From positions 124,001-188,000 of the IMG/VR virus record IMGVR_UViG_3300023199_000204: a DNA stretch of 64,000 nt; one strand, given 5' to 3'. A program made the translations under genes and the position numbers. Position 1 is the first letter of the stretch. The number at the start of each line of letters is the position of its first letter. The notes beneath the pieces are model-generated. The model saw only the letters and a list, made by a program, of their open reading frames with translations, ran no database searches and was not told the origin of the DNA. Shown piece after piece: positions 11,769 to 51,204 of this stretch.

Positions 11769-14700
11769 ATGGAACTATCAGCGAGGATTTTGTCGGATAT
11801 TGTTGTTTATATGAAATATGCGAGATTTAAACCGGAACTTGGAAGAAGAGAAACTTGGAAAGAACTTATTACTAGAAATAAAAATATGCACATTAAAAAA
11901 TATCCAAAGCTGGAAGACGAAATAGAGGAGGCATATAAATTAGTTTATGATAGAAAAGTACTACCCTCAATGCGCGGACTCCAATTTGGTGGAAAGCCTA
12001 TTGAAATAAACCCAAGTAGGTTATACAATTGTTGCTATACTCCTATGGATGATTGGAGAGCATTTTCAGAAATAATGTTTTTGCTTTTGGGAGGTTCAGG
12101 GGCAGGTTATTCAGTTCAACATCACCATATAGATAAACTACCAGAAATTAAACGACCAAGGAAAAGGAAAAGAAGATATTTAGTTGGAGACTCAATCGAG
12201 GGATGGGCTGATGCTATTAAAGTTTTGATGAAATCATATTTCTTTGGAATGTCTGATATAGATTTTGATTATTCAGATATTAGGCCGAAGGGAACTAAAC
12301 TAGTGACAGCTGGTGGAAAAGCTCCTGGTCCCCAACCTTTGAAAGATTGTATTCATAACATAAGAAAGGTTTTGGATACTAAAGAAGTTGGTAGCAGGCT
12401 TACTTCTTTAGAAATTCACGACATAAATTGTTTTATTGCTGATGCAGTATTGTCTGGTGGGATTCGAAGATGTTTACCACAAAATACTTTAATTCACACT
12501 AAGAATGGATTAGTAAAGATAAAAAATATTAATGTAGGAGATGAAGTTTTAGTTGGTGTTAATAAGTGGGAAAAAGTATATGCTAAAGAAAATACTGGAA
12601 ATAAAAGTCTTTTGACAATAAAGACACAGTTAGGCAATTTTTTCAGTACTCCAGAGCATCGTTGGGCAGTTTTAAAAAACTTAGAAGGAGAAATTTTTTG
12701 GAAAGAGGCGCAAAATTTGTCTAGTCAAGATAGATTAGTTTTTGTTCCAGATATGTTATCACCAGATAACAATTTAGATTTTCCAGAATGGAAATACATC
12801 CCTCCTAAACACTCTACAATTAGTAAAAATATCAAAATTCCAAAATTTTCTGATAAGTACGCGTGGTATCTTGGGTTTTTACATGGGGATGGTTATGTTT
12901 GTAAGTTTAAAAACCTTTGGAAACAGGTAGTTTTTTCTTGCGCCCCAGATATGCCCAAATCTTATAAAAAGGTAATGGAATTGTCTAAAAATTTCAATGT
13001 AAATCCTAGACCTGTTATGAAAACAGATGGTGCCGATAAAATAGTAATAAAATCTAATCAATTAGCAGAATTTTTAAGTCAATACAAAACATCAAATACA
13101 TCAATAGAAGTTCCTGATATTATTCTTAGGGGAGATTATAAAATTAAATCATCTTATATTGCTGGAATCTTTGATGCTGATGGTAGCGTAAAGTCTAAAA
13201 ATAATAAAAAAGTTATGCCCGCAATAAGTTCTATATATTTTGATTATTTAAGACAACTTAGAGCAGTTTTAGCGAGCTTAAATATTCCAACAAAAATTAG
13301 TATTGTTAGACCAGAAAAAGGTAATTGGAAGACATTATATAAGTTAACTACTGTAGGCCAAGAATCTTTATATAGATTTCATGAACTTATTGGCCCGTAT
13401 TCTGAGAAGTGGCAAAATGATAGTAAAGATTTTTCAAGAAAGTGCGAAAGGAAGTCTTTTACCGTGCCCCCAAAATTATTGAAAGAGTCCCAATATAAGA
13501 ATCTTTTTAATGGAAGTTATTCTTCAGATTCTAGGGTAGAGTTATCATTTTTAAAGTTTGAGAAAGATACGAAAAAAAGAGGATATAAGCCAGTTAAAAT
13601 AGTTGAAGTTATTGATGAAGGTATAAAAACCGAGACATATGATATATCAGTAGAAAATGAATTTTGTTTTGTTGCAGAAGGAATGTTAGTTCACAATTCC
13701 GCTATGATTAGTCTCTTTTCATTTGATGATGAAGATATGATAACTTGTAAATATGGTGCTTGGTGGGAACTAAATCCACAAAGGGCGAGAGCAAATAATT
13801 CAGCTGTAATATTGAGGCATTTAATAAAAGAAGAAGAGTTTTATGACTTTTGGAAAAGAATAGAATTATCTAATTCTGGTGAGCCGGGAATATTCTTTTC
13901 AAATGATATGAACACTGGATCGAATCCATGTATGGAAATATCATTAAAGCCCAACTGTTTTTGTAATTTATGTGAAGTTAATGTAAGTGATGTTGAAAGT
14001 CAGGAAGATTTAAATAAAAGAGTTAGAGCTGCTGCTTTTATAGGGACATTACAGGCAAGCTATACTAATTTTCATTATTTAAGAGATATATGGAAACGAA
14101 CAGCAGAAAAGGAAGCTTTACTTGGAATAGGATTAACTGGTATAGCCAGCAATGCTATTCAAAAATTTGATTTACAAGAATCTGTCAAAATAGGAATGAC
14201 AGAAAACGAGAGGGTGGCTAATTTATTAGGAATTAATAAAGCAGCCCGAGTAACTTGTATTAAGCCTTCTGGGACATCTGCTTTAGTTTTAGGTTGTTCT
14301 AGTGGAATACACGCATATCATTCTAAGTATTATATTCGTAGAATTAGAGTTGGAAAGGATGAGGCCATATATAAATATCTTAAAGAACATCTTCCTAATA
14401 TTATAGAGGATGATTTCCTAAAACCAAAACTACAAGCTGTAATCTCTTTACCAGTTAAAGCACCACAAGGTTCAATTTTAAGAAATGAGTCTGCTCTTTC
14501 TTTGTTAGAAAGAGTAAAAGATTTTCATAACAACTGGATTAGTCCGGGGCACAGAAAGGGACAAAATAAGCACAACATTTCTTGTACTGTTTCTATTAAA
14601 AAAGATGAGTGGAAAACAGTAGGCAAATGGATGTGGGAAAACAGAGAGTTTTATAATGGTCTGTCCGTTTTGCCTTATGACTGTGGTAGCTATACTCAAG

Positions 14701-14849
14701 CACCTCTTGAAGAGTGTAGTGAAATAGAATATTTTAATATGCTTAGTAATTTGGAAAAAATTAATTTAAAAGATATTGTAGAGGGGGAAGATAATACAAT
14801 GTTTAATGAAATCGTTGCTTGTGCGGGCGGAAAATGTGACATTGTATAA
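11769..14849 (+). CDS. nrdJ: Class II (B12-dependent) ribonucleotide reductase, intein-containing; about 617 aa after splicing
   Basis: VLPSMRGL, YNCCY, NPCMEISL, CNLCE, TCIKPSGT, C-terminal ACAGGKC. Confidence 0.93.
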   Translation: MELSARILSDIVVYMKYARFKPELGRRETWKELITRNKNMHIKKYPKLEDEIEEAYKLVYDRKVLPSMRGLQFGGKPIEINPSRLYNCCYTPMDDWRAFSEIMFLLLGGSGAGYSVQHHHIDKLPEIKRPRKRKRRYLVGDSIEGWADAIKVLMKSYFFGMSDIDFDYSDIRPKGTKLVTAGGKAPGPQPLKDCIHNIRKVLDTKEVGSRLTSLEIHDINCFIADAVLSGGIRRCLPQNTLIHTKNGLVKIKNINVGDEVLVGVNKWEKVYAKENTGNKSLLTIKTQLGNFFSTPEHRWAVLKNLEGEIFWKEAQNLSSQDRLVFVPDMLSPDNNLDFPEWKYIPPKHSTISKNIKIPKFSDKYAWYLGFLHGDGYVCKFKNLWKQVVFSCAPDMPKSYKKVMELSKNFNVNPRPVMKTDGADKIVIKSNQLAEFLSQYKTSNTSIEVPDIILRGDYKIKSSYIAGIFDADGSVKSKNNKKVMPAISSIYFDYLRQLRAVLASLNIPTKISIVRPEKGNWKTLYKLTTVGQESLYRFHELIGPYSEKWQNDSKDFSRKCERKSFTVPPKLLKESQYKNLFNGSYSSDSRVELSFLKFEKDTKKRGYKPVKIVEVIDEGIKTETYDISVENEFCFVAEGMLVHNSAMISLFSFDDEDMITCKYGAWWELNPQRARANNSAVILRHLIKEEEFYDFWKRIELSNSGEPGIFFSNDMNTGSNPCMEISLKPNCFCNLCEVNVSDVESQEDLNKRVRAAAFIGTLQASYTNFHYLRDIWKRTAEKEALLGIGLTGIASNAIQKFDLQESVKIGMTENERVANLLGINKAARVTCIKPSGTSALVLGCSSGIHAYHSKYYIRRIRVGKDEAIYKYLKEHLPNIIEDDFLKPKLQAVISLPVKAPQGSILRNESALSLLERVKDFHNNWISPGHRKGQNKHNISCTVSIKKDEWKTVGKWMWENREFYNGLSVLPYDCGSYTQAPLEECSEIEYFNMLSNLEKINLKDIVEGEDNTMFNEIVACAGGKCDIV
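12471..13697 (+). mobile_element. NrdJ intein (409 aa, LAGLIDADG)
   Basis: GGIRR/CLPQNT start, STPEHRW, LGFLHGDG, AGIFDADG, LVHN/S end. Confidence 0.93.
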
Positions 14850-15720: not shown

Positions 15721-16995
15721 ATGAAAACATTTTTGCTAGACACCAATATCTTCCTTGTTGATCCTGCCTGTTTAAAATCATTTAAAAATAACGAAATAGT
15801 CATTCCACTATCAGTAATCGATGAGCTAGATGAAGCTAAAAATCGTCCTGATGCGATAGGAAGGAATGCTAGAGAAGCAATTAGAATTTTAGATGTTTTA
15901 AGAAAAAAAGGTAATATTAGCAAAGGGGTAAGTTTAGAAGACACTTTAATAAGAGTAGAGCTTAATCATTCCGATAATATTCCATCTATGTTGTCAGATA
16001 AAAAGAAAGACAATAGATTTATAAGCACTGCTTTAGGTCTTAAAAGGGAAGGAAGTAAGGTAATAGTAATAACAAAAGATATTAATCTTAGAGTTAAATG
16101 CGATGCCTTAGGGCTTGAGGCAGAAGATTATGAAACTGACAAGATAGCTAAAAATCCCTCTGATATTTATTCTGGAATTAGAGAAGAGTTTGTATCTCAA
16201 GAAACAGTGGATAAGCTATATAAAGAAGAGGATGGAATAGAAGGCTTTGAAGGCTTTCCCAATGAATTTATTCTCCTTAAAACTGAACACAATAATTGTG
16301 TGGGGTTAGGAAGAATTGTTGGAGATAAGCTTAAAAAGTATAATAATATCAAGAAAATATGTGGAATTAGTCCAAGAAATTTAGAACAAAAAATAGCTTT
16401 TGAGTTATTAATGGATCCAGATGTTAAGCTAGTTACATTGGTTGGTCTTGCTGGAAGTGGCAAGACTGTAATGGCGGCAGCGGCTGGATTACATCACATA
16501 TTAAGCCAAGGCAATACATATCAGAAGCTTCTTATATCTAGACCTATACAGCCTATGGGAAGAGATTTGGGCTACCTTCCTGGTGACATTGATCAAAAAC
16601 TAGATCCTTGGATGCAGCCAATTTACGACAATTTCGAGCTTCTTTTGGGCAACAGTAGAGAAAATTTAAGGATGTATAAGGAGCAAAGACTAATTCAAGT
16701 AGAGCCTTTAACATACGTTAGAGGCAGAAGTATCCCAAAAGCTTTCATAATTCTTGATGAGGCTCAAAACCTTAGCATTAATGAAATTAAGACAATTGTA
16801 TCAAGAGCTGGCGAAGACACGAAAATAGTAATTACTGGAGATATAGAGCAGATTGATAACCCTTATGTAGATTTTGCTGATAATGGATTAACACACGTTG
16901 TTGAAAGATTTAAGGATTATGGAATTGCGGGACATATAATGCTTCAAAAATGTGAAAGATCTAAACTTGCGGAACTAGCCGCCAAAGTGCTGTAA
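15721..16995 (+). CDS. phoH: PIN-domain PhoH-family protein (PhoH2/YlaK type)
   Basis: PIN: LLDTNI, VIDELD, DNRFI, ITKDINLRVK; ATPase: GLAGSGKT, LDEAQN, TGDIEQID. Confidence 0.92.
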   Translation: MKTFLLDTNIFLVDPACLKSFKNNEIVIPLSVIDELDEAKNRPDAIGRNAREAIRILDVLRKKGNISKGVSLEDTLIRVELNHSDNIPSMLSDKKKDNRFISTALGLKREGSKVIVITKDINLRVKCDALGLEAEDYETDKIAKNPSDIYSGIREEFVSQETVDKLYKEEDGIEGFEGFPNEFILLKTEHNNCVGLGRIVGDKLKKYNNIKKICGISPRNLEQKIAFELLMDPDVKLVTLVGLAGSGKTVMAAAAGLHHILSQGNTYQKLLISRPIQPMGRDLGYLPGDIDQKLDPWMQPIYDNFELLLGNSRENLRMYKEQRLIQVEPLTYVRGRSIPKAFIILDEAQNLSINEIKTIVSRAGEDTKIVITGDIEQIDNPYVDFADNGLTHVVERFKDYGIAGHIMLQKCERSKLAELAAKVL

Positions 16996-20876: not shown

Positions 20877-21945
20877 TTGTAAATCGCCTCTAATAACTGA
20901 AAATAATATTAAAACACCAGATAATATAAATATTAATGATGAATTATTAACTTATAAAAATGGAAGAGTTTTAAAATCAAAAGTAGTAAACATTTATAAA
21001 GAAAAATTAGAAGCAATAGAATGCTTATATTATGGAAAAAACTTATGTTGGTCTACTTTTAATAGTAAATGGATTTCTGTTGATGAGAGAAGACCAAGAA
21101 ATGAAAATAAAAAACTAATACAAAATATTAAAAATCATAGAAAATTAAAGCGAGCCCCATTCTTTAAAAGTAATTTAGGTAGTGTGGATGAGCCACACTC
21201 TTATGCCATTGGAGCTTTATTAGGAGATGGATGTAGTATTAATGGTAAAAATAAAATTTACATTTCTTCAAAAAACTCTATTATACCAAATAAAACAACT
21301 AGAGTAATTTCAGCAAAATATTGTTATAAACTTAAAGGGAATAATTATACTTATTGTATAAGTAACGAGCCAAAATATACTAATCCACACAAAACTACAA
21401 AAGTAAAATGTCATTTTTATAATAATTGGATCGAGGATAGATATGCTCACCAAAAAATAATAGATATTAACAAAATTAAGAAGTGGAATAGATTATCTTG
21501 TATAAAGCTGTTAGCAGGATTATTAGATACAGATGGATCCGTATCTATTAATAATAATAGATTAACTATTTCTTGGGGAATGCAAGCAAAAGAAGTTATT
21601 AAATGTATTAAATATTTAATATTATCTCTTTGGTACTTCAGTCCTTCTATTTATACTAGCAAAAGAGATAAATATAAAAATGGACCATTATATGTTATTT
21701 CAATAAGAAATAATAGAATATCAAAAATGATGTTAAAAGAAATGAATAAAGAATTAGTTTGTGATAGAAAGAAGTATAAAAGCTTTTACAATAATATTAA
21801 AACACCAGGCACTTCTGATTTATTTTTAACAGTTAGATTAGGTAAGAAAGAAATTAGAGATATGTATAATATTTTTATTAATAATCCTATTATATTGGCT
21901 AATAATAGGGTAGTTTGTGGATTTGAGGAGTTAAATGAAGAATAA
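20857..21945 (+). mobile_element. Free-standing intein-derived LAGLIDADG homing endonuclease with degenerate splicing motifs
   Basis: IGALLGDG and LAGLLDTDG motifs; Hint-like N- and C-terminal blocks lacking the block-B His and terminal HN; no exteins. Confidence 0.7.
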
Positions 21946-24385: not shown

Positions 24386-25230
24386 TGAAAGAAATTAAAG
24401 TCTTAGAGAAAGGCTTTGTAAAATTGGTTGATTATATGGGTGATGACAGTTCAATAGTACAAGCCGCACGAGTGAGTTATGGAGAAGGAACTAAAACTAT
24501 AAGAGAAGATAGAGATTTAATAAGATACTTAATGCGTAATAAGCATTCTTCACCTATGGAAATGGTAGAATTTAAATTTCATATTAAATGTCCAATATAT
24601 GTTTTTAGGCAAATTATTCGGCATAGAACATTTTCAACAAATGAAATCAGCCTTAGATATTCAATAGTTAAAGATGAATTTGATTTAACTCTAGAAAATG
24701 AGTGGCGAGTTCAATCAAAAAATAACAAACAGGGCAGTGAGGGACTAATAAGTAAAGAACTAGGTATAAGTTTTACTGATAAAGAAAAATATATAGCCAA
24801 TAATGCTAAATCAGCATATGATAAAATGATCGTTAATGAAGTAGCGAGAGAGCAGGCTAGAAAAGTTCTTCCAGTATCTTTATATACTGAAGCCTATTGG
24901 AAGGGAAATTTACATAATTTATTTCATTTTCTTGGGTTAAGACTAGATTCGCACGCACAACAGGAAACTAGAGAATATGCTGAAGCTTTATTTAATTTAA
25001 TAAAACCAATAGTTCCCATTTCCTGTGAAGCTTTTGAAGATTATAGATTAAATGCTGTTCAGTTCTCTTCTAGAGAATTGAAATTAATACAAAAAGCCCT
25101 AAAAGAAGGCATGATTCCAGATAGAAAATGGATTAAGGAAAACGCAAATGGCAAACATCCAGAATTAGAATTAAGCCAAAGGGAGAGGAGAGAATTTCGG
25201 ATTAAACTTAATCGAAATGTCGATAATTAA
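24385..25230 (+). CDS. thyX: Flavin-dependent thymidylate synthase
   Basis: IVQAARVSY, HSSPME, RQIIRHR, NEISLRY, AREQARKVLP, AQQETR. Confidence 0.95.
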   Translation: MKEIKVLEKGFVKLVDYMGDDSSIVQAARVSYGEGTKTIREDRDLIRYLMRNKHSSPMEMVEFKFHIKCPIYVFRQIIRHRTFSTNEISLRYSIVKDEFDLTLENEWRVQSKNNKQGSEGLISKELGISFTDKEKYIANNAKSAYDKMIVNEVAREQARKVLPVSLYTEAYWKGNLHNLFHFLGLRLDSHAQQETREYAEALFNLIKPIVPISCEAFEDYRLNAVQFSSRELKLIQKALKEGMIPDRKWIKENANGKHPELELSQRERREFRIKLNRNVDN

Positions 25231-27458: not shown

Positions 27459-30400
27459 ATGACAAAGAAAAAAATAACAAGTAAAAAGAAAACAAGTGCT
27501 GTTAAAAAACCAAATTTGGTTGAGCAGTATTTGAAAAAAAATAAGTCTAAGTTAATGGAAAACGAGAGCATTTTGGATGTAGGACCAGGTGAAGATGGAA
27601 AGATTGTTGTATTAACATCTGATCCAAATCTAGAACTCAAAGAAGTAAAGGGCGTAGAATTTAATATATTATTTGCTGGAAATCAGAAATTAGAGGAAAT
27701 TAGGGCTAAATATAATTTAGTAGCGAACCCACTTGTGGAAACTCACAAAGCATCAGAAGCCATAAATCCCAACTCTGAATCAGCAAATATAGAAGAATAT
27801 AAAGCCTGGAAAAAAAGACACTCAAGGAGTTAAAATGGATTTTGTAACACTGTTAAACAGAGGGCATAAGTCTTATATTGAAAAGTATCTAAAACCTAGA
27901 AAAAATGGCACGTGCGATGATTGTGAATGTTATGCGTTGCTAATATCTACATTTTTAGATTCTGATATATGGAATTTGTGCGAAAAATGCTACTCGGAAG
28001 TTATAAAGGAGTATGAATTCTAGGTGAAAAAAATGAAACTGGTAAATAGTAATAATAGAGAAGAAACATTAAATTTGATAGACCAGATATTGGAAGATTA
28101 CAACGATGTTGGTGATTTTTTTGATTTAAATCTGGAAGACATAAGAGAGCCGTGTTGGCAAATTAAAATAGATAGGAAAGAAGATTTAATAAGGTTTTTA
28201 ATAGATTTAAAAGAAATAACAAATTTTCCTTTGCCCGAAGTTGATATAAATTCTGAATTTTTATATTTGGCAATGAAATTATTTAAAACAAAAGACCTTG
28301 TTAAGCTTGAAGATTTTTTAAAGTCTGGAAGTTATGAAACGTTATAATAGAAGATTATTATTTTTAATTATAACTATAGCAGCCGTGGCAATTGGCGGAT
28401 CGGTATTTCATTATCATTTTAGGCAGAATAATAAGTCTTTTTGTAAGCTTAGCGAATATAAAAGATTTAAAAGATGTCCTTGGATTAGAAGAACTTTGAT
28501 TTTTAATAAAACTTCTTGGGCTGTGGAATATTATTGTAATCGCAATGAAGCGTTTTTTCAAATTTTTAATCCTACCCTATCTGTTAAAAATTATGTAGCA
28601 AAAAGATTTGTTCGGCTTTCTTTAAGTGGTTTTAAGGTTAATAAAGAATGTCAATCCAAAAAACAAATTACCTATCACTTAATAAGATGAATCCGTTTTC
28701 TCAATTCCCAAAATTATTAGAAATGTTGGTAAATAAAATATCCGAGATTTCTCCAGAAAATGAAAGCGAAAGTGCTAAAAAAGCAAGGAAAAAGTTGCTT
28801 AAAAATTTAGAAAATGTTAATCAAACTTTGATTAATATCTCTGATAATAATGAAGAGCTGCCATTTACCAATGAACAAATAGAAGCATTGGCTAAAATAA
28901 GGCTAGAAACAAAAGATATAGAAGAAATGGTAAGAAAAATTACTAATTTTAAGGAGAAGATTAATGAAACTGATAAATAGCAATTCATTAACTCAAATGA
29001 AGGCTTTCGAAGAAATGGTAGAACAACTATCGTTTGAATTCGATTCAGATTGTAATTTTGTTAACAATTTGGAGTTTTCAGATGAAGATGTAGAAATGAT
29101 GCTTAGTTTACTTGACGAATGGGATAGTGTTCAAAAAGATAGTAAAGTGATAGATTATTCAAAAAATCAAGAAGAATTTATGTTTTATATCCCTGAACCA
29201 TTGGGAGATGAAACTACTGAAAAACATTCAAAAAATCTCAAATTTAGAGATGTAACTACGACTTTCACTTTTTAAGTCTCTGCTAATATTTTTACATCAA
29301 GATTATGAGTAATATCAGCAAAATTGCCCAAGATTTATACTATGCTATGATCACTTCTGGTATGGTTAAACAGGCTATTAAATTAAAAGAAACAGTAGCA
29401 GAGGTTAATTCCTCATTGGATTCCTATATTGATTCCACTATCTATCAAATGATAGAAGATTTAGAACATCACGGCAGAGATGAGGTGGTTAAATCTATTA
29501 AAAAGGCGGCAGAAAGCCTATGAAAATAATATGTATTAATTCGAATGATAGGGTAAAAACCCTTTGTAGTGACTATACTTTAACTATTTTAAATAGCACA
29601 CCGTATAATGATTCATTGGATTTTATTCGTTATGAACATACTGGGGATTATTATACTACAACATCAACGGCACCAGATGATTGGATATATTTTCCATCAA
29701 ATTTGGCATATGACAGCACCACAACAGGAGCTAATAACGATGAATAGGAAACTGAAATACTGGCTAGAGACTAAAGGCAGAAGGCTCATAGAGCTTAAAC
29801 TGGCGGGATGTAGCGAGTATTTCGCCAAGGTAAGGGATATTGGCAAAATGGAAACAATTTCTGCCGAAGAGTGGGTTGAATTTATCGCACTCACAGGGGA
29901 AATGGATGCCTTGCTTTGGGTCCTTCAACCTAAGTCTTCTGAGAGAAAAGAAAAATTTAAAACCGAAGTTAAAAACTTTCTAATCAAGATTGAAAGCCAA
30001 ATTTTGGAAATTAATGAAATAACAGGTCAGGCTTTGCTTCCAAAAGGTGAGGCGTGACACGGCTGATTAACTCTGGTGTTGAATTATGTGTAAGAACTTC
30101 AAAAGGGGACCTCATCGTGAGGTTCCCTTCTTGCGTTAGGTTTATGTATTATAGAATATTTAAAAAATCAGGTATGTATATAGCAAAAGAGCAAATGGAC
30201 CCAGATCTAGAGTTTGTTTGCTCTGTTAAAATTCCACAGGATATAGTCATAAAATGAAATCAAAAATAATATCTATTCTTAAAGATGTTTCCTCCTATTA
30301 TTCAAAATTCTCATCAAAAGAAAAGAAAATAAGAATTATATTTGAATGTCTAAATTGTAAGACAACTTACGATATGACAACTATTTATAAAGATAAATAT

Positions 30401-33935: not shown

Positions 33936-34237
33936 AGTCCTAAATCCAAATGATTTATATCAACTAACAAAAAAAAAACAAGCGGCTCCTCAATATTGAA
34001 GAGGCTTGGGTGGGTGAATATTGTTCAACACTCTTCCTGAAAACAAATCACTTTCGATTCTTTGTTGATCTAAATAAAATAAATCCTAGCAAAATTAGAT
34101 GCCGGCTGTCTATTTATAATGATAAAATCACCATAGGAAATATTGTTAATTATAAAATTGTTGAGCACTTTCTAAAATATCCCTTCAATATTGAAGAACT
34201 TAAATCTTTCAAAGATATTGTTGAAAAATATAAATGA
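33925..34237 (+). pseudogene. KIKVLNP-family ORF, apparently frameshifted in an A-run (or sequencing error)
   Basis: MKIKVLNPNDLYQL start; C-terminus in another frame resembles 33343/33621 (ELKSFKDI vs KLNDFKEI). Confidence 0.5.
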
Positions 34238-34239
34238 TC

Positions 34240-34750
34240 CAGCCTCTCAAAACTTTCCTCTCCAGTATATAATCCCCCTCCGTAACGTCTCGAATTTATT
34301 AAGCTTTTTAAACCAATATATTCCCCTCCTAACTTCCCAATATTATTCAATAAATTAACCCACCAAATTAATACAAATAGCTAAATTCCAGCCTCTCAAA
34401 AAAATCAACCAAGCCGGGCTATAAGAATGTGATAAATATCTGTTTTTATTGTTGCTGATCATATAAGTAAATCTAATATAAACCATAAGCATAAAAGCAT
34501 TTCTCTCCTCCCTATCTCTCTTATATCTAATAACTCATAACCTCATTGCCACATATACATTAAGCTATATCTTACCCCTATTCTCTTCCTTTCCCCTAAC
34601 CTATACATATATATACATTATTAATCTTAAGAGCCACTTCTTACTTCTATCTTACTCCTTTCTCTATATATTAAACTTAATCTTAAGCTGTATGTTAAAC
34701 TTAATAGCTACATCTTACCCCTCCTATCCCTTTACATATATATACATAAA
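34240..34750. other. G-depleted non-coding junction, candidate genome end or origin
   Basis: 8 G in 240 nt at 34501-34740; TACATATATATACAT direct repeat at 34604 and 34733. Confidence 0.5.
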
Positions 34751-35210
34751 TTTACCGAACGGGGTGCCCCGGAGCCTCAACTTCAAAAGTTTCCCGCCTG
34801 GGTCCGTACTACATCACCCTACGTGTAAGATAATATCCTACATATAAATAACTCCCTGAAATTATTGATGAAAATATTTTTCCGTTTGAAAAACAATGGA
34901 TCGACGATTATATTAGGTTGAAAGCGGCAAGCTGTGTCGGCATGGCGCAGCAAGGGTGAGCAGGCACAGGGGGCGAGTGGGTGATACACACCTGAGCCCC
35001 CGCAAGAGACCCGAAGGGTCTCTGCTCCCCAAAAAACACAGTGCTGGGCGTTTGATTTATCCAGCACGACGCTTTTAGAAGGTTGAGAGCGTCGGCGTCT
35101 GCGTGGTGTAGGCGTCGTAATCCTGGCGGGATTTCCCGCCGCATACGGAACGGGGCCGGCTTAGGCATAAAGCCCCAAAAGATAGCGGGTAAAACCGCAA
35201 GGAGACTATC

Positions 35211-35720
35211 ATGAGTAAGTTCAGCATTTTCTTGGGAAGGGGAACGCAGATCAGCATCGCGAATACGAAGCTGCGCGAGAGCGTCGTCAGGGCAGCGGAG
35301 GAGCGCAACGTGGGGGAGGAGAAGCTCAAGGCGCAGCTGGATAAGCTGTGCAGCCCGGAGGATCGCGCGGAGTGCCAGTCCGTGTTGGAGGGAGGTGGGT
35401 CCGTGACCACGAGCCTCTACGATCTCAACGACCTTACCCCGGAAGTGCGCAAGAAGGCCGTGGCCTTCTTGCGCCAGCTGGCCAAGCAGGCGGGCAGCAA
35501 GGTTCGCGAAGTGCGGTTCACCGTGACGGCACCGAAGTCCGGAAAAGTCGTAGGTAAGTCGTCCGGCCTCAAGGGCATTCTCAACGCGCCGGTGACCATC
35601 ATGGGCGCCGAGCTTGAGCGCGCTGGCGCCAGCAAGTCGGACGGGCCGAGCGCCTTTGACTCGGCCATCGCCTCGATCCTCGGGTCCGAGGACACCGACA
35701 GCGAGACCGCCGACGCCTAG
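35211..35720 (+). CDS. GC-rich hypothetical protein, first gene after the junction
   Basis: AAGGAG RBS, strong G/C third positions, hairpin after stop. Confidence 0.85.
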   Translation: MSKFSIFLGRGTQISIANTKLRESVVRAAEERNVGEEKLKAQLDKLCSPEDRAECQSVLEGGGSVTTSLYDLNDLTPEVRKKAVAFLRQLAKQAGSKVREVRFTVTAPKSGKVVGKSSGLKGILNAPVTIMGAELERAGASKSDGPSAFDSAIASILGSEDTDSETADA

Positions 35721-36616
35721 ACTCTTCGGGGGCGCAAGCCCCCGACATTCCTACCTTTTTAAAGGGGCGGTCCCATTAACTTGGGGTCGCCCCTTTTCCC
35801 ATTCGAGCGCTAAATGCGTTTCTGCGTGTTCGAGCAAGGGATCGCCCACTGCTACGTCCCTAGACTTGTCTATGTGGGGGCGTATCAAATCTCGACATGT
35901 GCGGACGCATCCGCACCGTTCGACGATTACTGGCTGGTTCGCTAAGTCGACTCAGTCACACCTTTTGCCCGCTTTCCTTAATGGTTTGCGGGCTTTAGGT
36001 GTTCGAAGGGTTTTCTCCCTTCGAACGCAGATCTTAAACTTGCTTTGATGTTTCTTGGGAATAATCTCCCAGAAAGCATCATAACCAGCGTTGCGGTCGT
36101 CACGGCAGCAAAAGCAGGCAAGGGACAGTATGATGCCGCGATTCATCTCGTGGCTAAGTCTCTGGTTTTCCCCGACCACAACTCTTGGGGGAATGAGTGG
36201 AGTACTGCCTTCACTCACGCAACATTGGAGCTAGACTCCAATGATCACGGCAGGTTCTACCGCTAGCTAAGGTTCTTTTTGTTTCTTGGGCACCATAGGT
36301 GCCCTTTAAGCATTCGAGGAGACTTTCTCCAAAAAACAAAAGGGTTTATATCTCTACTTGACTTTAAAACGAGGGTAGGGTTCGTGAACCTAGGAAACTG
36401 TAAGCCTAATTACAGTGGGCGGGGGGCCTCACATTTCATAGTTATTTTTTTGAAAAGGTTCGTGTTAATTCTGGGAGCTATGGCTCCCTATAAGCATTCG
36501 AAAACCCACAAACAAGGAAGCTCCCAGTAGATGAGTTGAAGCGACTACTTAACTCTTAATGTTAATGTTTAGAGGGCACCATAGGTGCCCTTTAGGTATT
36601 CGAGAAAGGTAAAGCA

Positions 36617-36763
36617 ATGACCACTTTTATCACGGGCTTTCTGGTTGTGGGGATTGTATTCATTCAGAACCCAGCGAAATACTTTGATGTATGCGCTGGA
36701 TTCTTTGTGGGTTTGGTTTTCACTTTGATTATGGTTTTGGTTTTTGGAAACCAAAACCGATAA
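36617..36763 (+). CDS. Small membrane protein, 48 aa
   Basis: Read manually; two hydrophobic stretches; lies between two hairpin elements. Confidence 0.6.
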   Translation: MTTFITGFLVVGIVFIQNPAKYFDVCAGFFVGLVFTLIMVLVFGNQNR

Positions 36764-36860
36764 TTTTTTTCTGAAATTTTTTTTTGGAAAAGGGCGTATT
36801 AATCCTTCCAAGGGTTCACGCCCTATAGGTGTTCGAAAACACACAAACAAAGGAGCTATT

Positions 36861-37160
36861 ATGCTCACTCGGAAAGAGAAAGAAGAACTGTTGCGAAGGA
36901 TCCTAACCTTTCGCAAGGGCAAAGTGAACCTTCGGACGCAACGACCGAAAGGTCAGGATCAAGAATCACTGCGTGCGTACTTCGTGTGGCGCATGGCGAG
37001 ATTCCATGGTGGAGAAGATCTGAGCATGCCGATTCAGGCACTTCAGGTCATTGGAGATGACGAAGCGCTCCCCGACTTGAAGGAGATGGCCGACAAGCTG
37101 GCGAAGCGTTTCTTTGGGAGTGACATGCGAGCCGTCAATCGGTTCGAGGGTCTCTTCTAG
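36861..37160 (+). CDS. Hypothetical protein, paralog of 49629-49949
   Basis: AAGGAG RBS; shares MLT...RKG...YFVWR. Confidence 0.8.
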   Translation: MLTRKEKEELLRRILTFRKGKVNLRTQRPKGQDQESLRAYFVWRMARFHGGEDLSMPIQALQVIGDDEALPDLKEMADKLAKRFFGSDMRAVNRFEGLF

Positions 37161-37212
37161 GGGAGACATATACATCGGCAAAACACTTTAAGGGCACTTC
37201 GGTGCCCTTTAG

Positions 37213-37786
37213 GTGTTCGACAATACACAAGCAAAGGTGGCTATAGTGGTTGTCATCCGTCACGAAATTATCAACACCTTAAAGGGAGACTTTGAGGTTT
37301 TCTCGGGAAAGAATCCCGAGCAAGTGGCCTGGATTCTCTCTTACGTTAAGAGAGAGTTTAAGGGGCGACTGTTTCCAGCAACTCCTGGAAATCCTGACGG
37401 CATCGTCAGGAATGACCAGGGCGAGGAAATCGGCCTCTATACCTATGAGGCTCCTCCGTTTCGGCCTCGCAACTCCACGTGGCTATATGTGGAAATTCGG
37501 CTGTGAGCCATAGAGCCTTTACAGGTTTATATACTTTTGCCCACTTTCCTTAATGGTTTGTGAGCTTTAGGTGTTCGAAACCTCATAGTCAAGGAGAGTT
37601 GAAATGACTCAGAACCTGTATCAAATGACTCGTCGCCTCCATCGCAAAAGCCCGCAGCAGCTAAGGGCGTTGCTAAACAAGCTGGCGGTCATCGGTGCGA
37701 CCACGAAGACCAACGTCTCCGGCTACATGAGGGACGTGAGCCACATGATGGCTTGGAAACAAGTGGAGGGGCCGCACAAGCGATAG
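37213..37786 (+). other. Two small hypothetical ORFs (37213-37506, 37604-37786)
   Basis: One ORF per inter-hairpin interval; start of the first is uncertain. Confidence 0.6.
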
Positions 37787-38148
37787 GTCTGCGGGACTTA
37801 AACAAAACACTCACAGGCGCGCGGGATTATTTCCTTAGCGCCTTTGGGTGTTCGAAGAGCAGAGCCGGTTGGTCCCTGGTTCGAATCCTACTTCTCGGCT
37901 TCGAGGAAAAAAAGTTTGAGAAGTATGACTTCGGAATATAAACTTCTTTGATAAAAGGGTCTTCGGACCCTTTAGGTATTCGAAGGGCGTAAAGCTTAAT
38001 TGTTTAACTTGACAACTTAGCTTAACTACTTAACAATTTAATATCTTAATCTTACACCCTTCCTCTTAACTTAATGTTTCTTTTGCCAGTTGAAACTGGC
38101 AGCTAACCTCAACCCAGAGCAAGAATGCTCCAAACCAAGGAAAAAACA

Positions 38149-38511
38149 ATGAGCACGACCACGAACAAAATCATCGAGCAGGCGAAGTCGGCAATAGTGA
38201 ATGGTACGAAGATCGGCGCCAGCGTCAATCTCGGTCGTCAAATCACCAAGCTGGTTCGCGATTTCGCGGGAGCACACTACCCCGAGGCTTTCAACAGCCC
38301 GCTGTTCAAACAGGTGGAGCCGCTTCTGGTGGCTTTCATCGTCCAGGCTGCGACCACGGCATATCCGAATGTGCCGGGAGCGCAGAAGGCGAACAAGGTC
38401 GCTGGACTGGCAATGGTCGGTGAGGCTGCCCTTCTGACCCAGGAGCTGATGTCCAAGGTGGATGTGAGCACGCTGTTCCAGCGAGTGGCTGCTCTCGCTC
38501 CAACGGAGTAA
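38149..38511 (+). CDS. GC-rich hypothetical protein
   Basis: AAGGA RBS, high GC3. Confidence 0.8.
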   Translation: MSTTTNKIIEQAKSAIVNGTKIGASVNLGRQITKLVRDFAGAHYPEAFNSPLFKQVEPLLVAFIVQAATTAYPNVPGAQKANKVAGLAMVGEAALLTQELMSKVDVSTLFQRVAALAPTE

Positions 38512-38522
38512 GCAGGTATAAG

Positions 38523-38558
38523 GCTTCAACGGGGCCGCGGCTCGATGGCCGCGGTGAT
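38523..38558 (-). CRISPR. Solitary 36-nt CRISPR-repeat-like unit, type I-G (I-U)-like; no array
   Basis: Minus strand ATCACCGCGGCCATCGAGCCGCGGCCCCGTTGAAGC: 7-bp stem and TTGAAGC 3' end. Confidence 0.55.
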
Positions 38559-38636
38559 GCTTGTACCTTTCGAGAAACCGCCAGTGCGGTAGGCAGGTAT
38601 AAGAAACAAAAAAAACAACAAACAAAAGGAACTGCT

Positions 38637-39227
38637 ATGTTGAAACTAGGTTTTTCGGAGCTTGTGATTCACAAACGCTTTAACAAGGTCCTTCTCAACA
38701 AACTCAAGAAGTCAGAATACGAGTTCGGTCTTACGGGCTCGTACTTCTTCGGGACCTATCGCCCTGATAGTGACCTTGATCTCTTCGCCAAGGACTCGAA
38801 TGAAGTTCGTAGATTCCTCTACGAATGTAATTTTAATATCGAGTGGGAGGTGAATGGGTATGGGGACAAAAATACTGTCTTATTGTTAAGGCATCACTCC
38901 AATCCTCACATCGATGTTCAGTTGGTGCGGGACACCGCTGCCAAAAAGGATGTGGAGGAGAGGATCAAAAAGGAAACGGGTTGTTGGATCCTCACTCCCC
39001 AATGTGGTGAGACCAAGACCTCTATTTGCTTCAAAAAGCGGCGTGCTACTTTGTATGATATGCTGTATGGGCTGTATGTTTCGGGACACCCCGATTCGCC
39101 TCTTGCGCAGCATATCACAAATCGTTCAGACGTGCTGAACAAGAAGTTGGGTTTGGGTTCGGCACCCAGCGTCGCAGGGAGCAAGAAGGAAACACCAGCA
39201 CTCAAGGGATGGCCTTTCACGTCCTAA
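38637..39227 (+). CDS. Nucleotidyltransferase (pol-beta superfamily, MNT-like)
   Basis: LTGSYFFG...DSDLDL and third Asp in HIDVQ. Confidence 0.8.
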   Translation: MLKLGFSELVIHKRFNKVLLNKLKKSEYEFGLTGSYFFGTYRPDSDLDLFAKDSNEVRRFLYECNFNIEWEVNGYGDKNTVLLLRHHSNPHIDVQLVRDTAAKKDVEERIKKETGCWILTPQCGETKTSICFKKRRATLYDMLYGLYVSGHPDSPLAQHITNRSDVLNKKLGLGSAPSVAGSKKETPALKGWPFTS

Positions 39228-39249
39228 AAACAGGAGATAAAACCATTTT

Positions 39250-39322
39250 GGGCCCATAGCTCAGCGGTTAGAGCGTCGCTCTCATAAAGCGGGGGTCCCT
39301 GGTTCGAATCCAGGTGGGCCCA
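39250..39322 (+). tRNA. tRNA with CAT anticodon (elongator Met or Ile2); no encoded CCA
   Basis: Full cloverleaf, GGGCCCA/TGGGCCC, loop CTCATAA, GGTTCGAATCC. Confidence 0.95.
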
Positions 39323-39572
39323 AAGCAACAATTAATAAAAATAACGAAAGGAGCCAAACAATGCGATAATCTAATATTATTGAAGGAAAACATATATAGT
39401 GTCCTGGGGCTGCCCAACTTTAATAGGTTGGGCAGCCCTTTAGGCATTCGTGAACTTGGCGATATAGGTTAACTTGGTACGCGACAAGAGAATTGCGAAT
39501 TGCGAATTGCGAATTGCTAAGGATCATGGGGAAATTTCCTGGGGGTTTTCCCTGGGACGAAAGGACAGAATC

Positions 39573-39878
39573 ATGAAGACCATGAAGACCATCAGCAAAG
39601 ACATGATCAAAGAGTTGCAGGTCGGCGACGCCGTACTGGTCCTGACCAGCACGGCGCATTACTGGACAGGGAGGATCGTCTCTCTGTCCATGACAGAGAT
39701 CGCCCTCGACGAGGCGGCCTGGATCTCGCAGGTGGGCCGCCACAGCGACTGCGTCGCACGAGGAGACCTGAGTGGGGCTGAGATCGAGCCCCACGCTGAC
39801 GGGCAGATTACCAGGCTGCCTCGGATCGGCAGCGTGGTAGTGGACTGGATCCACGCGTTGCCGCGCGAGCAGCGCTAA
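39573..39878 (+). CDS. GC-rich hypothetical protein (Sm/SH3-like beta protein typical upstream of Ser/Gly-repeat phage genes)
   Basis: HYWTGRI...LDEAAWI...EIEP; AAGGA RBS. Confidence 0.75.
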   Translation: MKTMKTISKDMIKELQVGDAVLVLTSTAHYWTGRIVSLSMTEIALDEAAWISQVGRHSDCVARGDLSGAEIEPHADGQITRLPRIGSVVVDWIHALPREQR

Positions 39879-40270
39879 TGGACGATCTCGCAGGGGAGCT
39901 CGAGCAGCTGATGCGCGCTGGAGACGAGCGCGTGCTCACGGACTACATCGCCGAGCACGCGCTCGAGTGGCTGTGGCTGCCGGCGCCGACCCTTCCGCTG
40001 ATAGCGTGGTCTGGGCGGCTGTCGGGGTCGCGGTCGCGGTCGAGGTCGTGGTCGTGGTCGCTGTCGGGGTTGCGGTCGCGGTCGAGGTCGTGGTCGCTGT
40101 CGGGGTTGCGGTCGCGGTCGAGGTCGAGGTCGCGGTCGCGGTCGAGGTCGTGGTCGGGGTCGGGGTTGCGGTCGCGGTCGAGGTCGTGGTCGAGGTCGTG
40201 GTCGGGGCCGAGGCCGAGGTCGAGGTCGCGGTCGCGGTCGAGGTCGTGGTCGGGGTCGGGCTGGCTCTGA
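39878..40270 (+). CDS. Low-complexity (Ser-Arg/Trp/Gly)n protein
   Basis: TAATG coupling to upstream gene; C-terminal 80 aa of SR/SW/SG dipeptides. Confidence 0.75.
   Translation: MDDLAGELEQLMRAGDERVLTDYIAEHALEWLWLPAPTLPLIAWSGRLSGSRSRSRSWSWSLSGLRSRSRSWSLSGLRSRSRSRSRSRSRSWSGSGLRSRSRSWSRSWSGPRPRSRSRSRSRSWSGSGWL
40022..40261 (+). repeat. Tandem hexamer repeat, mostly TCG-NGG, about 40 units
   Basis: tcgcgg/tcgagg/tcgtgg/tcgggg seen directly. Confidence 0.95.
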
Positions 40271-40343
40271 CGTCGCGCGTGCCGGTATAGATACGATAGG
40301 AGGGGTTATGATTACTTTCGTATTTTTCTGACGGAGGTGAATC

Positions 40344-40478
40344 ATGCGCAAGACTCATAAAAAGATTGGTCCTGGCGGAGTGAAGTGTCCTTGCTGTAAT
40401 CCTTATGGTAAGGACATTAAGAAAAAGCTTAATCGTTGGGAGCGACGCAAGGTAAAACAAGAGCTTAAAACTTATTAG
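40344..40478 (+). CDS. Small basic protein, 44 aa, GPGGVKCPCC motif
   Basis: Read manually; GGAGGTG RBS. Confidence 0.75.
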   Translation: MRKTHKKIGPGGVKCPCCNPYGKDIKKKLNRWERRKVKQELKTY

Positions 40479-40503
40479 CTTATGGGGTGCTGTGAGAGTT
40501 TGG

Positions 40504-40706
40504 AAATGCTGGGAGGTAGGCTTAGAAGCAGCCAGCGGTGTTGAGCAAACCGCATACCTTTAAAGAGTAGCTCATACCCACTCTAGGTGAGTTTGACCGT
40601 GAAGGCTCGCGGAAACCTTGCCGGAGTTTAGGAGTCGGTCTAGAACGACTTTTAATGAAAACCAGGGTTGAGAAAATGCTTTTGGCGTAATAGCACACCA
40701 GTATTT
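40504..40706 (+). ncRNA. Candidate ncRNA mimicking the 23S rRNA L11-binding GTPase-associated centre (H43-H44) with two insertions
   Basis: Collinear blocks GCTGGGAGGTAGGCTTAGAAGCAGCCA / CCTTTAAAGAGT / GCGTAATAGCACACCAGT closed by 9-bp helix 40504-40512:40698-40706. Confidence 0.85.
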
Positions 40707-41150
40707 ATTGGAGTAAAAATCCTAAAGGTCGTTGGTCTTTCTCAAGACTACGACCTTTAGGCATTCGAGGACACTTTAGCGCGTATGGTTGGAAGGTTGG
40801 TATATACATTTAAGTGTTTGACTGTGTTGTGGAGCACCCCCCCCAATGAGATAAGGGACTTCAAGTTCTTTTCCTAAGTGTGTGGGACCGAAAGGTCAAA
40901 AACTAACACAGCGAGATCGGCGGAAGTATCACACGACTCCGCGCGGATCTCCATTTGGCGATAAAAAATAACAGAATAAGGATAAGCCCGGATACTTAAT
41001 TGTATTCGGGCTTTAGGTATTCGAGGAGCTTGTCTCCTAGAAATTGTTAGACCTTGTGAAGACCGCGGGGCGCCACTTCCCCCGGCCGGCAGACACGCCG
41101 GTGTTCTTCCGGCGGAAGAAATAGCGGTTAGCCGCTGAAAGGAAAGGTAC

Positions 41151-41891
41151 ATGCGACTCTCAATCAAGATGTCCAACATCGACGCGCTGTGCGAGGAGCT
41201 ATTGAAGCTCCCAGCCGGTGCACTCTTTCGCCACAACGACGCCGGTGACCTGCCCGCCGCAGGTCGCAGGCAGAAGTTTTTCTTCACTAACCGCGGGCAA
41301 GCCAAGACGGGATACTCGTACCGGACGCGCACGAGTCGCGGTAGTTGCCCGCGGTCGTGCCGTCTCTTCGATATCTGCTACGCTAGCGTTAATCCTCTCC
41401 GATGGTACTGGCAGCAACTCGGACGTTGGTACAAGCGCGGCGCGGAGTATCTCGATCACCGTACCGTGATCAAGCTCGCCAAGGCGGCTTCGCACCTGAC
41501 GGGTTGGACCTACACGCATTGGGACTGGAAGCGCTACTTGCGCACGTTCCTGCGCGGCAACGAGCTCGGGTTCACGATCAACGCGTCGACCGAGAGCCCC
41601 GAAGAGGCACTCGAGGCGTTCCGCGCAGGTCTGCCGGTCACACTCGTCGCTCCGCCCTTCGTGCGCAAGAAGATCATGCTCGAGGACGTGCCCGCCATCC
41701 CTTGTCCCGCGCTCCTGCAAAAGGGCTTCACATGCGACATGTGCGGCAAGGGTTCACCTCTGTGCGCCCGAGCCGACAGGCACTACATCATCCTGTTCCC
41801 CGCGCACGGCGCCAGAGCCCGAGCCGTGTGGAATCGCATCGCGAAGTTCTGGACGGACTTTCTGCCCGAAATGGAGGACGCCTGTGCCTAG
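41151..41891 (+). CDS. GC-rich Cys-rich phage protein (DUF7227/Gp88-like)
   Basis: RHNDAGDL, CPRSC...CYA, WTYTH, GFTINAS, CPA...CDMC...C, FPAHG. Confidence 0.65.
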   Translation: MRLSIKMSNIDALCEELLKLPAGALFRHNDAGDLPAAGRRQKFFFTNRGQAKTGYSYRTRTSRGSCPRSCRLFDICYASVNPLRWYWQQLGRWYKRGAEYLDHRTVIKLAKAASHLTGWTYTHWDWKRYLRTFLRGNELGFTINASTESPEEALEAFRAGLPVTLVAPPFVRKKIMLEDVPAIPCPALLQKGFTCDMCGKGSPLCARADRHYIILFPAHGARARAVWNRIAKFWTDFLPEMEDACA

Positions 41892-42193
41892 AAGAGACGA
41901 CGATGTGGGCTGGGCGGCCATCTAGAGTCTCACCTAAGTCGACGGGTGAAAAAAAATACCGTCCATACAAATCCGACTCATATGTTTCGCCCAAGTTCAA
42001 GTCGCACACTCACACTATGGGGGACATACCATAGGGCTACTGGCTTGCTATAAAGGAAACTAAGACGCTCGCGAGCGCATCTTTCCTTTACAGCAGCCAG
42101 TGGCCTTTTGGTGTTTCGACTGCCTTGGGCAAATGCGCGATAACGCGCGCGATATAGGGTTAAAGAAGTTTTAAATCATCATTATTCGAATAT

Positions 42194-42269
42194 GCACCCG
42201 TATCGGACAGGACTTCTAATCCTGAGCACCGTAATTGGATCGATGCAGGTTCGAGCCCTGCCGGGTGTA
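42194..42269 (+). ncRNA. Non-canonical tRNA-like RNA with Arg(TCT) anticodon hairpin and rearranged D-arm
   Basis: Acceptor GCACCCG/CGGGTGT, CAGGA-CTTCTAA-TCCTG only 7 nt after acceptor, T-arm GCAGG-TTCGAGC-CCTGC. Confidence 0.75.
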
Positions 42270-51095: not shown

Positions 51096-51204
51096 GTGGT
51101 AGTAGTCTAAAAGCGATCAAAACGAGAGGAAGGGTTCATCCCAACCGAGCGGGACTAGGACGCCGTAGGCCACGGAATTGTAGGTTCGAATCCTACCTAC
51201 CACA
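51096..51204 (+). ncRNA. tRNA-shaped RNA with expanded D-arm and no canonical anticodon loop
   Basis: Acceptor GTGGTAG/CTACCAC+A, T-arm GTAGG-TTCGAAT-CCTAC, stem TAGTC/GACTA enclosing about 45 nt. Confidence 0.7.

Follow-up and report, generated by a model that had tools for sequence, protein, structure and literature searches.

The 76-nt element at positions 42194-42269 (+) raises the question of whether a sequence with the acceptor, anticodon and T arms of a tRNA, but with no room for a D hairpin in its usual place, is a genuine tRNA gene and, if so, what has become of its D-arm. The element lies in a window of 64,000 nucleotides (positions 124,001 to 188,000 of IMG/VR virus record IMGVR_UViG_3300023199_000204; all coordinates below are those of the window), which is part of a 316-kb record with about 30% G+C. 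The record encodes a DnaB-type helicase, ribonucleotide reductase and PhoH, so it is a jumbo phage. A sequence-only reading had described the element as a tRNA-Arg(TCT)-like RNA with perfect acceptor and T arms, in which ATCG and CGAT could pair so that the anticodon arm sits inside the D-loop. It had proposed either a functional AGA decoder whose fold evades host tRNA nucleases or a decoy, and had suggested that similar oddities may exist in other phages.

Layout of the element

To determine whether this description holds, we first read the segments directly from the sequence, and we set them out here together with the equivalents in a cloverleaf tRNA that we propose below.

42194-42200 (+), acceptor stem, 5′ strand (GCACCCG), pairing with 42262-42268.
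42201-42203 (+), connector U8-A9-U10 (TAT), proposed equivalents of U8, of A9 or A21, and of D-stem position 22.
42204-42206 (+), proximal helix, 5′ strand (CGG), equivalent of the D-stem 3′ strand, positions 23-25.
42207 (+), single A between the proximal helix and the anticodon stem, position-26 equivalent, a role inferred from the geometry.
42208-42224 (+), anticodon arm CAGGA-CTTCTAA-TCCTG, with the anticodon TCT at 42215-42217, U33 at 42214 and A37 at 42218.
42225-42228 (+), AGCA, asymmetric bulge or linker between the anticodon stem and the 3′ strand of the proximal helix (position 44 plus extra bases).
42229-42231 (+), proximal helix, 3′ strand (CCG), equivalent of the D-stem 5′ strand, positions 10-12.
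42232-42244 (+), D-loop-like connector TAATTGGATCGAT, of which 42232-42240 is TAATTGGAT, with A14/A15 equivalents at 42233-34, G18 G19 at 42237-38, A20 at 42239 and a U48 equivalent at 42244 (tertiary roles inferred).
42245-42261 (+), T-arm GCAGG-TTCGAGC-CCTGC, with a canonical T-loop.
42262-42269 (+), acceptor stem, 3′ strand (CGGGTGT, 42262-42268) and discriminator A (42269); no CCA is encoded, and TTA follows.
42026-42115 (+), upstream of the tRNA gene, a long stable hairpin followed by a U-rich stretch, with an MFE of -56 kcal/mol and z = -7.25 against shuffles, probably the end of the preceding transcription unit.

The observation made from the sequence alone is therefore correct, with the one qualification that the acceptor stem includes a G1-U72 wobble, so that it is paired but not perfectly Watson-Crick. 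The connector TATCGGA is 7 nt long, the D-loop-like UAAUUGGAU lies 3′ of the anticodon hairpin within a 20-nt stretch, AGCACCGTAATTGGATCGAT, and ATCG (42202-05) and CGAT (42241-44) are complementary in this copy. The anticodon loop is canonical for tRNA-Arg(UCU), and the element has the 7-bp acceptor stem with discriminator, the 5-bp T stem with a GTTCRANNC loop and the 5-bp anticodon stem with a 7-nt loop carrying U33 and R37 that are expected of a tRNA. The Rfam tRNA model (RF00005) scores it at 39.8 bits against a gathering score of 29 (E 2.7e-7 on the local stretch), but only by aligning the D-arm as deleted and the variable region as carrying a 17-nt insertion; the D hairpin (stem 10-13/22-25 with its loop) is absent between the acceptor and anticodon stems, where only 7 nt lie. 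ARAGORN calls five other tRNAs in the window but not this one. A minus-strand match to the Plastid-ycf2 RNA model scored 19 bits against a threshold of 65.7 and is noise, and promoter and terminator consensus scans around the gene found nothing above chance.

Homologues and covariation

We next asked whether the element is a one-off, using the homolog search and covariation analysis that had been named beforehand as a test. BLAST against cultured phages found the same layout in Agrobacterium phage Atu_ph04 and in several Streptomyces phages, whose acceptor, anticodon and T stems are entirely different but whose connector and post-anticodon segments are nearly the same. Pattern scans of IMG/VR gave 106 distinct members with the UCU anticodon, and keeping the scaffold pattern while changing the anticodon gave 99 distinct NCG members (ACG 69, UCG 27, CCG 2, GCG 1) and 25 CCU members, for a total of 230 distinct relatives with arginine anticodons. 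Because these patterns fixed GTAT, the anticodon, TAA, GGA and GTTC, conservation at those bases is partly by construction; the counts are lower bounds and the proportions are biased. One of the 120 metagenome loci (L343) comes from a record labelled human gut metagenome; we take it for a microbial contig, and it entered only the pooled counts. The cultured carriers are the Streptomyces phages LilMartin, Moab, Mildred21, Daubenski and TunaTartare, the Microbacterium phages A3Wally and Zooman, Agrobacterium phage Atu_ph04, Stenotrophomonas phage SOVA965, Limnohabitans phage DC31, Alishewanella phage Slicko01 and Salmonella phage SSBI34. The rewired gene lies at about 41427-41505 in SSBI34 (MZ520832.1), at about 38979-39053 in SOVA965 (PP079418.1) and at about 112818-112893 in Atu_ph04 (MF403007.1). 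In a single scan of 185,579 bacterial and archaeal species genomes, made with the UCU-type pattern only, just nine contigs were hit, all from metagenome-assembled genomes of unrelated phyla, and several of these are dense tRNA arrays or carry phage-type genes such as split topoisomerase II. The class therefore looks phage-borne.

To examine the secondary structure, we counted pairing over the 106 distinct UCU members. The acceptor stem is paired in 99.2% of cells with double-sided changes at 6 of 7 pairs, the anticodon stem in 94.5% with double-sided changes at all 5 pairs, and the T stem in 99.8% with double-sided changes at 4 of 5 pairs. The ATCG/CGAT helix put forward in the sequence-only reading is not supported. 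Its two outer pairs (A9-U, U10-A) are possible in all 106 members but never vary, so they say nothing either way, and its two inner pairs form in only 52/106 and 58/104 sequences. The four pairs carry about 0.24 pair probability in the single-sequence ensemble, and the third position shows some covariation with column 11 (CG 19, GC 18, UG 8, UA 7), but the structure costs +1.0 kcal/mol relative to the three stems alone, and column 11 is Watson-Crick paired with column 38 in every member, so it cannot also pair here. The loose link between column 50 and the 11-38 pair fits a base triple better than a helix, and we consider this fold very unlikely.

A different 3-bp helix holds instead, joining connector bases 4-6 (42204-06) to the three bases just before U-A-A (42229-31). 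In the 106 UCU members, pairs 11-38 and 12-37 are formed in 106/106, with 3 and 4 pair types. Once these positions were left free in the scan, the combinations observed were CGG/CCG, CUC/GAG, CAG/CUG, CAC/GUG, CAU/AUG, UGG/gCA and GCC/aGC, and the NCG and CCU sets add ACC/GGU, CCC/GGG, AAC/GUU, CGC/GCG, CGA/UCG and others. Over the 230 Arg members, the first two pairs are Watson-Crick in 230/230 each and the third is formed in 157/230 (156 Watson-Crick and 1 G-U), so that it is mismatched in about a third of members; there are 21 strand combinations, 16 of them fully Watson-Crick. Energy calculations neither favor nor exclude this helix in the window copy, giving -23.7 kcal/mol with it, -22.2 without it and an MFE of -24.9 with another small hairpin inside the extra region, and RNAalifold on the 106 sequences returns only the three main stems, which neither helps nor contradicts. 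The small hairpin of the MFE (36-38 with 43-45) was not upheld, as it is only 63.5% paired and shows no double-sided changes. A covariance model of the class (R1: the 7-nt connector, the 3-bp helix, a 4-5 nt bulge and a D-loop-like GG stretch leading into the T stem) gives 53-91 bits to members and 31 bits or less to canonical tRNAs in the same loci. The window copy fits this definition and scores 90.8 bits, the highest of all sources searched, although this is expected because it was part of the seed alignment.

TAT is present in BLAST-found homologues that no search pattern forced, with C at the third base in Limnohabitans phage DC31, and the base equivalent to position 26 is A, C or G. The linker after the anticodon stem is always 4 or 5 nt in the 230 members, of type AGNA or NGAAA, and is 8 nt in Salmonella phage SSBI34. 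The D-loop-like connector has the same order of bases as the D-loops of canonical phage tRNA-Arg(UCU) found in the same loci (AACTGGA, AGTAGGA). Among 66 first-set relatives, CCA is encoded in 40 and the discriminator is A or G in 63.

These data bear on two other explanations. The first is that the element is a decaying pseudogene or an assembly artifact, as might be suspected because ARAGORN does not call it and most GenBank records leave the homologues unannotated. However, hundreds of distinct copies carry compensatory changes in four helices, the locus is contained in two sequencing runs (no RNA run contains it), and the same class occurs in finished genomes of cultured phages, so that for practical purposes the covariation has refuted this explanation. 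The second is that the RNA folds as a floppy Y-shaped D-armless tRNA, like animal mitochondrial tRNA-Ser(AGY), with the extra 20 nt forming a loose variable region without D-loop/T-loop docking. Rfam aligns it that way, and mitochondrial and engineered D-arm-less tRNAs of this kind do function, the engineered one in E. coli (PMC11551756; PMC7609411). But the 20 nt are not loose, because three of them form a covarying helix with the 5′ connector, and GG and the following base are kept, with that base switching with amino-acid identity as described below. The short connector is as in the mitochondrial type, but the T-loop is fully canonical, GG is retained and the region after the anticodon arm is long. 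We therefore regard this fold as unlikely.

Amino-acid identity and codon supply

The first scans suggested that the class is restricted to arginine, but because they fixed GGA they could not test this. The covariance model and a free structure scan over 3.1 Mb of collected loci then found members with Ile anticodons (GAU, UAU), which carry GGU, so the arginine-only view does not hold. A metagenome scan with a pattern ending at GG returned 104 distinct Ile-anticodon members (UAU 71, GAU 33), in which the proximal helix is fully paired in 104/104 in ten combinations, U follows GG in 104/104, and the discriminator is A in 94/104. Of other anticodons, an NCM scan gave no valid member, and a non-C35 scan with GGA gave only the two Ile-anticodon members. 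The scaffold thus serves all Arg anticodons and two Ile anticodons, and the focus of the sequence-only reading on AGA was too narrow.

In Arg(UCU) members fetched by a pattern that did not fix the base, A follows GG in 44-46 of 46, and it does so in every BLAST-found Arg member. A20 is the established major identity element for bacterial ArgRS (Shimada et al. 2001, PMC61076, cited in PMC12475279), and the window copy has the bacterial ArgRS identity set of A20 (42239), C35 (42216), U36 (42217) and A73 (42269), with the placement of the relocated A in the position-20 site being inferred. This switch with the anticodon is the strongest indirect sign that the RNAs are charged and that the relocated loop plays the part of the D-loop. 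The Ile branch differs from Arg(UCU) by one anticodon base (UCU to UAU) and may derive from it, but this is a hypothesis only.

We then examined whether the host phage would need such a decoder. As had been stated from the sequence alone, AGA is the dominant Arg codon, with 1994 of 3194 Arg codons (62%, about 28 per 1000 codons) in + strand ORFs of at least 120 aa in the 316-kb record. ARAGORN finds 32 tRNAs in the record, of which the only Arg tRNA is Arg(ACG), and there is no second rewired gene and no ArgRS gene there, so that the element is the only AGA decoder found. In the tRNA-rich flanks of the UCU-type loci L001-L109, ARAGORN called 488 tRNAs but only three canonical Arg(UCU). The scanned tRNA region of Streptomyces phage Mildred21 has four rewired genes (Arg UCU, Arg UCG, Arg ACG and Ile GAU) and an annotated Arg(cct), but no canonical Arg(UCU), Arg(UCG) or Arg(ACG); the rewired genes supply those three anticodons. 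However, in Microbacterium phage Zooman a rewired Arg(ACG) sits next to an annotated canonical Arg(acg), so the rewired form is not always the only decoder. In one contig (G001, locus L165) a rewired gene has been cut in its anticodon loop, and its two remnants flank a canonical tRNA-Arg(UCU) and an HNH endonuclease ORF. This looks like a mobile cassette that destroyed the gene and brought a functional equivalent with it. As for feasibility, a D-arm-less tRNA is accepted by E. coli synthetase, EF-Tu and ribosome without adaptation (PMC11551756).

An alternative is that the RNA is not a translational adaptor but a decoy or sponge for tRNA-targeting nucleases or other tRNA-binding host factors, or a dedicated aminoacyl donor for a non-ribosomal reaction. 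The shape is unusual, carriers such as Mildred21 encode RNA ligase, polynucleotide kinase, tRNA nucleotidyltransferase and a Ro-like protein, which points to a tRNA damage and repair conflict, rewired and canonical Arg(ACG) sit side by side in Zooman, and aminoacyl-tRNA-dependent DNA modification by phage enzymes exists (PMC13219725). Against this, the anticodon loop, U33, the purine at 37, the discriminator and the position-20 base are all kept as a synthetase and ribosome would require, the range of Arg anticodons matches decoding needs, the element is the only AGA decoder in the record, and a canonical Arg(UCU) replaces it in L165. In addition, no partner protein gene is conserved next to it, as at most 11 of 106 loci share a neighbor family. 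We therefore consider this alternative, including the decoy that the sequence-only reading had offered, to be unlikely.

The proposed permuted D-domain

Our best explanation, in which we have fairly good confidence, is that 42194-42269 (+) encodes a tRNA-Arg(UCU) of a phage-borne structural class in which the D-domain is circularly permuted. In a cloverleaf tRNA, D-stem strand 22-25 runs through base 26 into anticodon-stem strand 27-31, and opposite it strand 39-43, base 44 and D-stem strand 10-13 form a quasi-continuous stack that is not covalently joined. In this view that stack is joined, so that the order is acceptor, U8-A9, a strand equivalent to 22-25, one base equivalent to 26, the anticodon hairpin, base 44 plus a 3-4 nt bulge, a strand equivalent to 10-13, then A-A-Y-Y-G-G-A (equivalent to A14 R15 Y16 Y17 G18 G19 A20), a few bases ending in U (a possible U48 partner of A15), and the T stem. 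The D-loop-like stretch, instead of returning, would run into the T-stem and replace the variable loop, and the anticodon arm would sit on top of a strand-swapped D-stem. The D-stem and anticodon stem would become one long hairpin of nine to ten stacked layers, as many as D-stem plus base 26 plus anticodon stem. In the canonical 3D structure the chain ends that must be re-joined (9 to 22, 44 to 10, 21 to 46-48) all lie in the core, and by this reasoning the GG of the relocated D-loop can still dock on the T-loop to make the elbow, with A20 still displayed there.

What our analysis establishes is the secondary structure, by covariation, along with the conservation of the layout, its apparent restriction to phage DNA and the link between the position-20 base and the anticodon. 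The L-shaped fold, which is reasoned from canonical tRNA geometry, as well as expression, processing by RNase P and the CCA enzyme, charging by the host ArgRS, use on the ribosome and reading of AGA, are inferred from sequence. The earlier interpretation is thus partly supported: the element is a tRNA-Arg(UCU)-type gene with a truly non-standard connectivity, under selection as a tRNA, in a phage whose main Arg codon is AGA and with the same oddity in many other phages, but the proposed fold is not supported and evasion of host tRNA nucleases remains conjecture.

Comparison with known systems indicates what is new. Canonical bacterial and phage tRNA-Arg(UCU) share the 7-bp acceptor stem, A/G discriminator, 5-bp anticodon stem with a CUUCUAA loop, canonical T-arm, G-G-A motif (G18 G19 A20), length of 75-77 nt and location in phage tRNA clusters, but have a D hairpin between positions 10 and 25 and a separate variable loop. 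Animal mitochondrial D-armless tRNAs (e.g., tRNA-Ser(AGY) and Ascaris tRNA-Ser(UCU)) also have a short connector between acceptor and anticodon stems and are also missed by cloverleaf-based gene finders, but they lack the GG/T-loop elbow contacts, have degenerate T-loops and short variable regions, and need adapted mitochondrial partners, whereas this class keeps a canonical T-loop and a relocated D-stem and D-loop and lives in phages of bacteria. The engineered D-arm-less mini HisT used by E. coli (PMC11551756) shows that bacterial synthetase, EF-Tu and ribosome can use a tRNA without a D hairpin, but it is artificial, 62 nt long with the D-arm simply deleted, unstable, and Y-shaped in models, whereas the phage class is natural and full-length and retains D-domain elements in a new order. 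Circularly permuted tRNA genes of the red alga Cyanidioschyzon merolae also involve permutation, but there the gene is permuted at the acceptor ends and processing restores a normal cloverleaf, whereas here the ends are normal and the mature RNA itself would have the permuted D-domain. Type II tRNAs and allo-tRNAs (long variable arm; 8/4 or 9/3 acceptor/T branches; PMC5389517) are likewise non-standard layouts found by mining metagenomes and phages, with extra bases between the anticodon and T arms, but they keep a D hairpin and fold the extra bases into their own arm; here there is no D hairpin, and the extra bases pair with the 5′ connector and carry the D-loop.

Full-text searches, within the one library of papers examined, found no description of this class. 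A 2020 review of non-canonical tRNAs lists nothing like it and mentions no phage or bacterial D-armless tRNA (PMC7609411), and a 2024 paper states that all known bacterial tRNAs are cloverleaves and that natural arm-less tRNAs exist only in mitochondria (PMC11551756). Here there are several hundred natural, full-length tRNA genes that cannot draw a cloverleaf, carried by phages of many bacterial phyla, so natural tRNAs outside mitochondria would not need to be cloverleaves. Gene finders miss or mislabel them, and records list them as ‘tRNA-OTHER’, ‘tRNA-Phe(gaa)’, ‘tRNA-Ser’ or nothing at all, so phage tRNA repertoires and codon-supply analyses undercount Arg and Ile decoders.

Why the permuted form is kept can only be conjectured. 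The leading idea, although a tentative one that we consider less likely than not, is escape from host or rival factors that read the canonical D-arm. It is made plausible by the RNA repair genes of carriers such as Mildred21, by the HNH or endonuclease VII genes that often sit next to the rewired genes, and by a 2025 study noting that T5 tRNAs differ from host tRNAs mostly around the D-loop, in the setting of tRNA-cleaving retrons (PMC12475279). The null is a single lucky rearrangement that stayed chargeable by ArgRS, then spread by horizontal transfer and diversified by anticodon changes within the Arg identity, with one jump to Ile. On the more speculative reading, phages have evolved and widely exchanged a topologically permuted tRNA body for arginine and isoleucine that host synthetases, EF-Tu and ribosome still accept but that defense nucleases, rival-phage tRNases or tRNA quality control no longer recognize, which would make it a structural counter-defense and a natural orthogonal tRNA chassis. 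If these RNAs are charged and used, they show a second way to build the tRNA core, they give a direct handle on which tRNA partners need the connectivity of the D-arm rather than its parts, they point to an unrecognized front in the tRNA arms race between phages and hosts, and they offer a ready-made scaffold for orthogonal tRNAs.

Rewired tRNA genes in other phages and their annotation

In locus L109, which is from Streptomyces phage Mildred21 (MF155946.1), we found that one phage carries four rewired tRNAs. These lie at L109:3704-3780, 16380-16454, 21368-21443, and 24858-24934, and they are Ile GAU, Arg UCU, Arg UCG, and Arg ACG. The record labels them, in that order, as nothing, "tRNA-OTHER," "tRNA-Phe(gaa)," and nothing, where the Phe label comes from GAA being read out of the CTTCGAA loop. 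This count of four leaves out two further "tRNA-OTHER" features of the same record, at L109:27926-27998 and 28559-28687. A different label was given to the rewired Arg(UCU) gene of Alishewanella phage Slicko01 (OQ508956.1; locus L163:1485-1563), which is annotated as "tRNA-Ser," presumably because the long post-anticodon region was taken for a type II variable arm.

The same rewired scaffold also has a sister branch with isoleucine anticodons, which we observed in metagenome loci L324-L403 and beyond and also in loci L308, L322, L111, L288, and L293. This branch comprises at least 71 distinct members with UAU and at least 33 distinct members with GAU, and in these U rather than A follows GG, while the discriminator is mostly A.

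Surroundings of the rewired tRNA gene in the window

The following features were observed in the window, with one further element outside it in the same virus record (G000).

1925-5134, 6333-10208, and 11769-14849: very long ORFs (1026-1291 aa)
34000-42000: 8-kb island of 47-56% G+C
38637-39227: weak nucleotidyltransferase match
39249-39323: tRNA-Met
41151-41891: DUF7227 protein
42026-42115: very stable long hairpin followed by a U-rich stretch
51096-51204: tRNA-like element
G000 255660-255759 (outside the window): tRNA-like element
39249, 46115, 51735, 57755, and 62331: canonical tRNAs

Directly upstream of the rewired tRNA, the 8-kb island at 34000-42000 has 47-56% G+C in a phage of about 30% G+C. 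The ORFs there are short and overlap on both strands, and only the tRNA-Met, the DUF7227 protein, and the weak nucleotidyltransferase match were recognized. When the island was compared with phages by BLAST, only the tRNA-Met was matched. Between the DUF7227 gene and the rewired tRNA lies the long hairpin at 42026-42115, which is very stable (-56 kcal/mol, z -7.25) and is followed by a U-rich stretch.

The window's canonical tRNAs, which are three CAT-anticodon genes and two Leu genes, are scattered singly every 5-7 kb among small + strand ORFs, and a dense tRNA array begins much further along the record, at G000 ~261-301 kb. In addition, the two tRNA-like elements, at 51096-51204 and at G000 255660-255759, are 100-109 nt long and have a 7-bp acceptor stem and a canonical T-arm, but they have a middle part of about 55-60 nt that fits neither the cloverleaf nor the rewired class. 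Neither is called by ARAGORN; the window copy scores 23 bits with R1, the covariance model of the rewired class, and the other scores 28 bits with Rfam tRNA.

Endonuclease genes and a split rewired gene

In the very long ORFs at 1925-5134, 6333-10208, and 11769-14849, replication or nucleotide-metabolism domains such as ribonucleotide reductase are combined with endonuclease-like or unrelated PHROG segments, and this may indicate inteins or fused homing elements. HNH or endonuclease VII genes lie immediately adjacent to the rewired tRNA genes in five unrelated cultured phages, namely SSBI34, SOVA965, TunaTartare, A3Wally, and Zooman (loci L162, L164, L166, L167, and L168). In Zooman, the rewired Arg(ACG) sits between annotated canonical Arg(acg) and Arg(ccg) genes.

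In locus L165, which is from IMG/VR contig G001, a rewired tRNA-Arg gene is split in its anticodon loop, with the following arrangement.

L165:1494-2106, minus strand: split rewired tRNA-Arg gene with the intervening sequence
L165:1541-1972: HNH endonuclease ORF, between the two remnants
L165:1976-2049: canonical tRNA-Arg(tct), between the two remnants

The last codons of the HNH endonuclease ORF run into the 3′ remnant of the rewired gene. The 3′ strand of the anticodon stem is missing, and thus we conclude that this is an insertion or replacement and not an intron.
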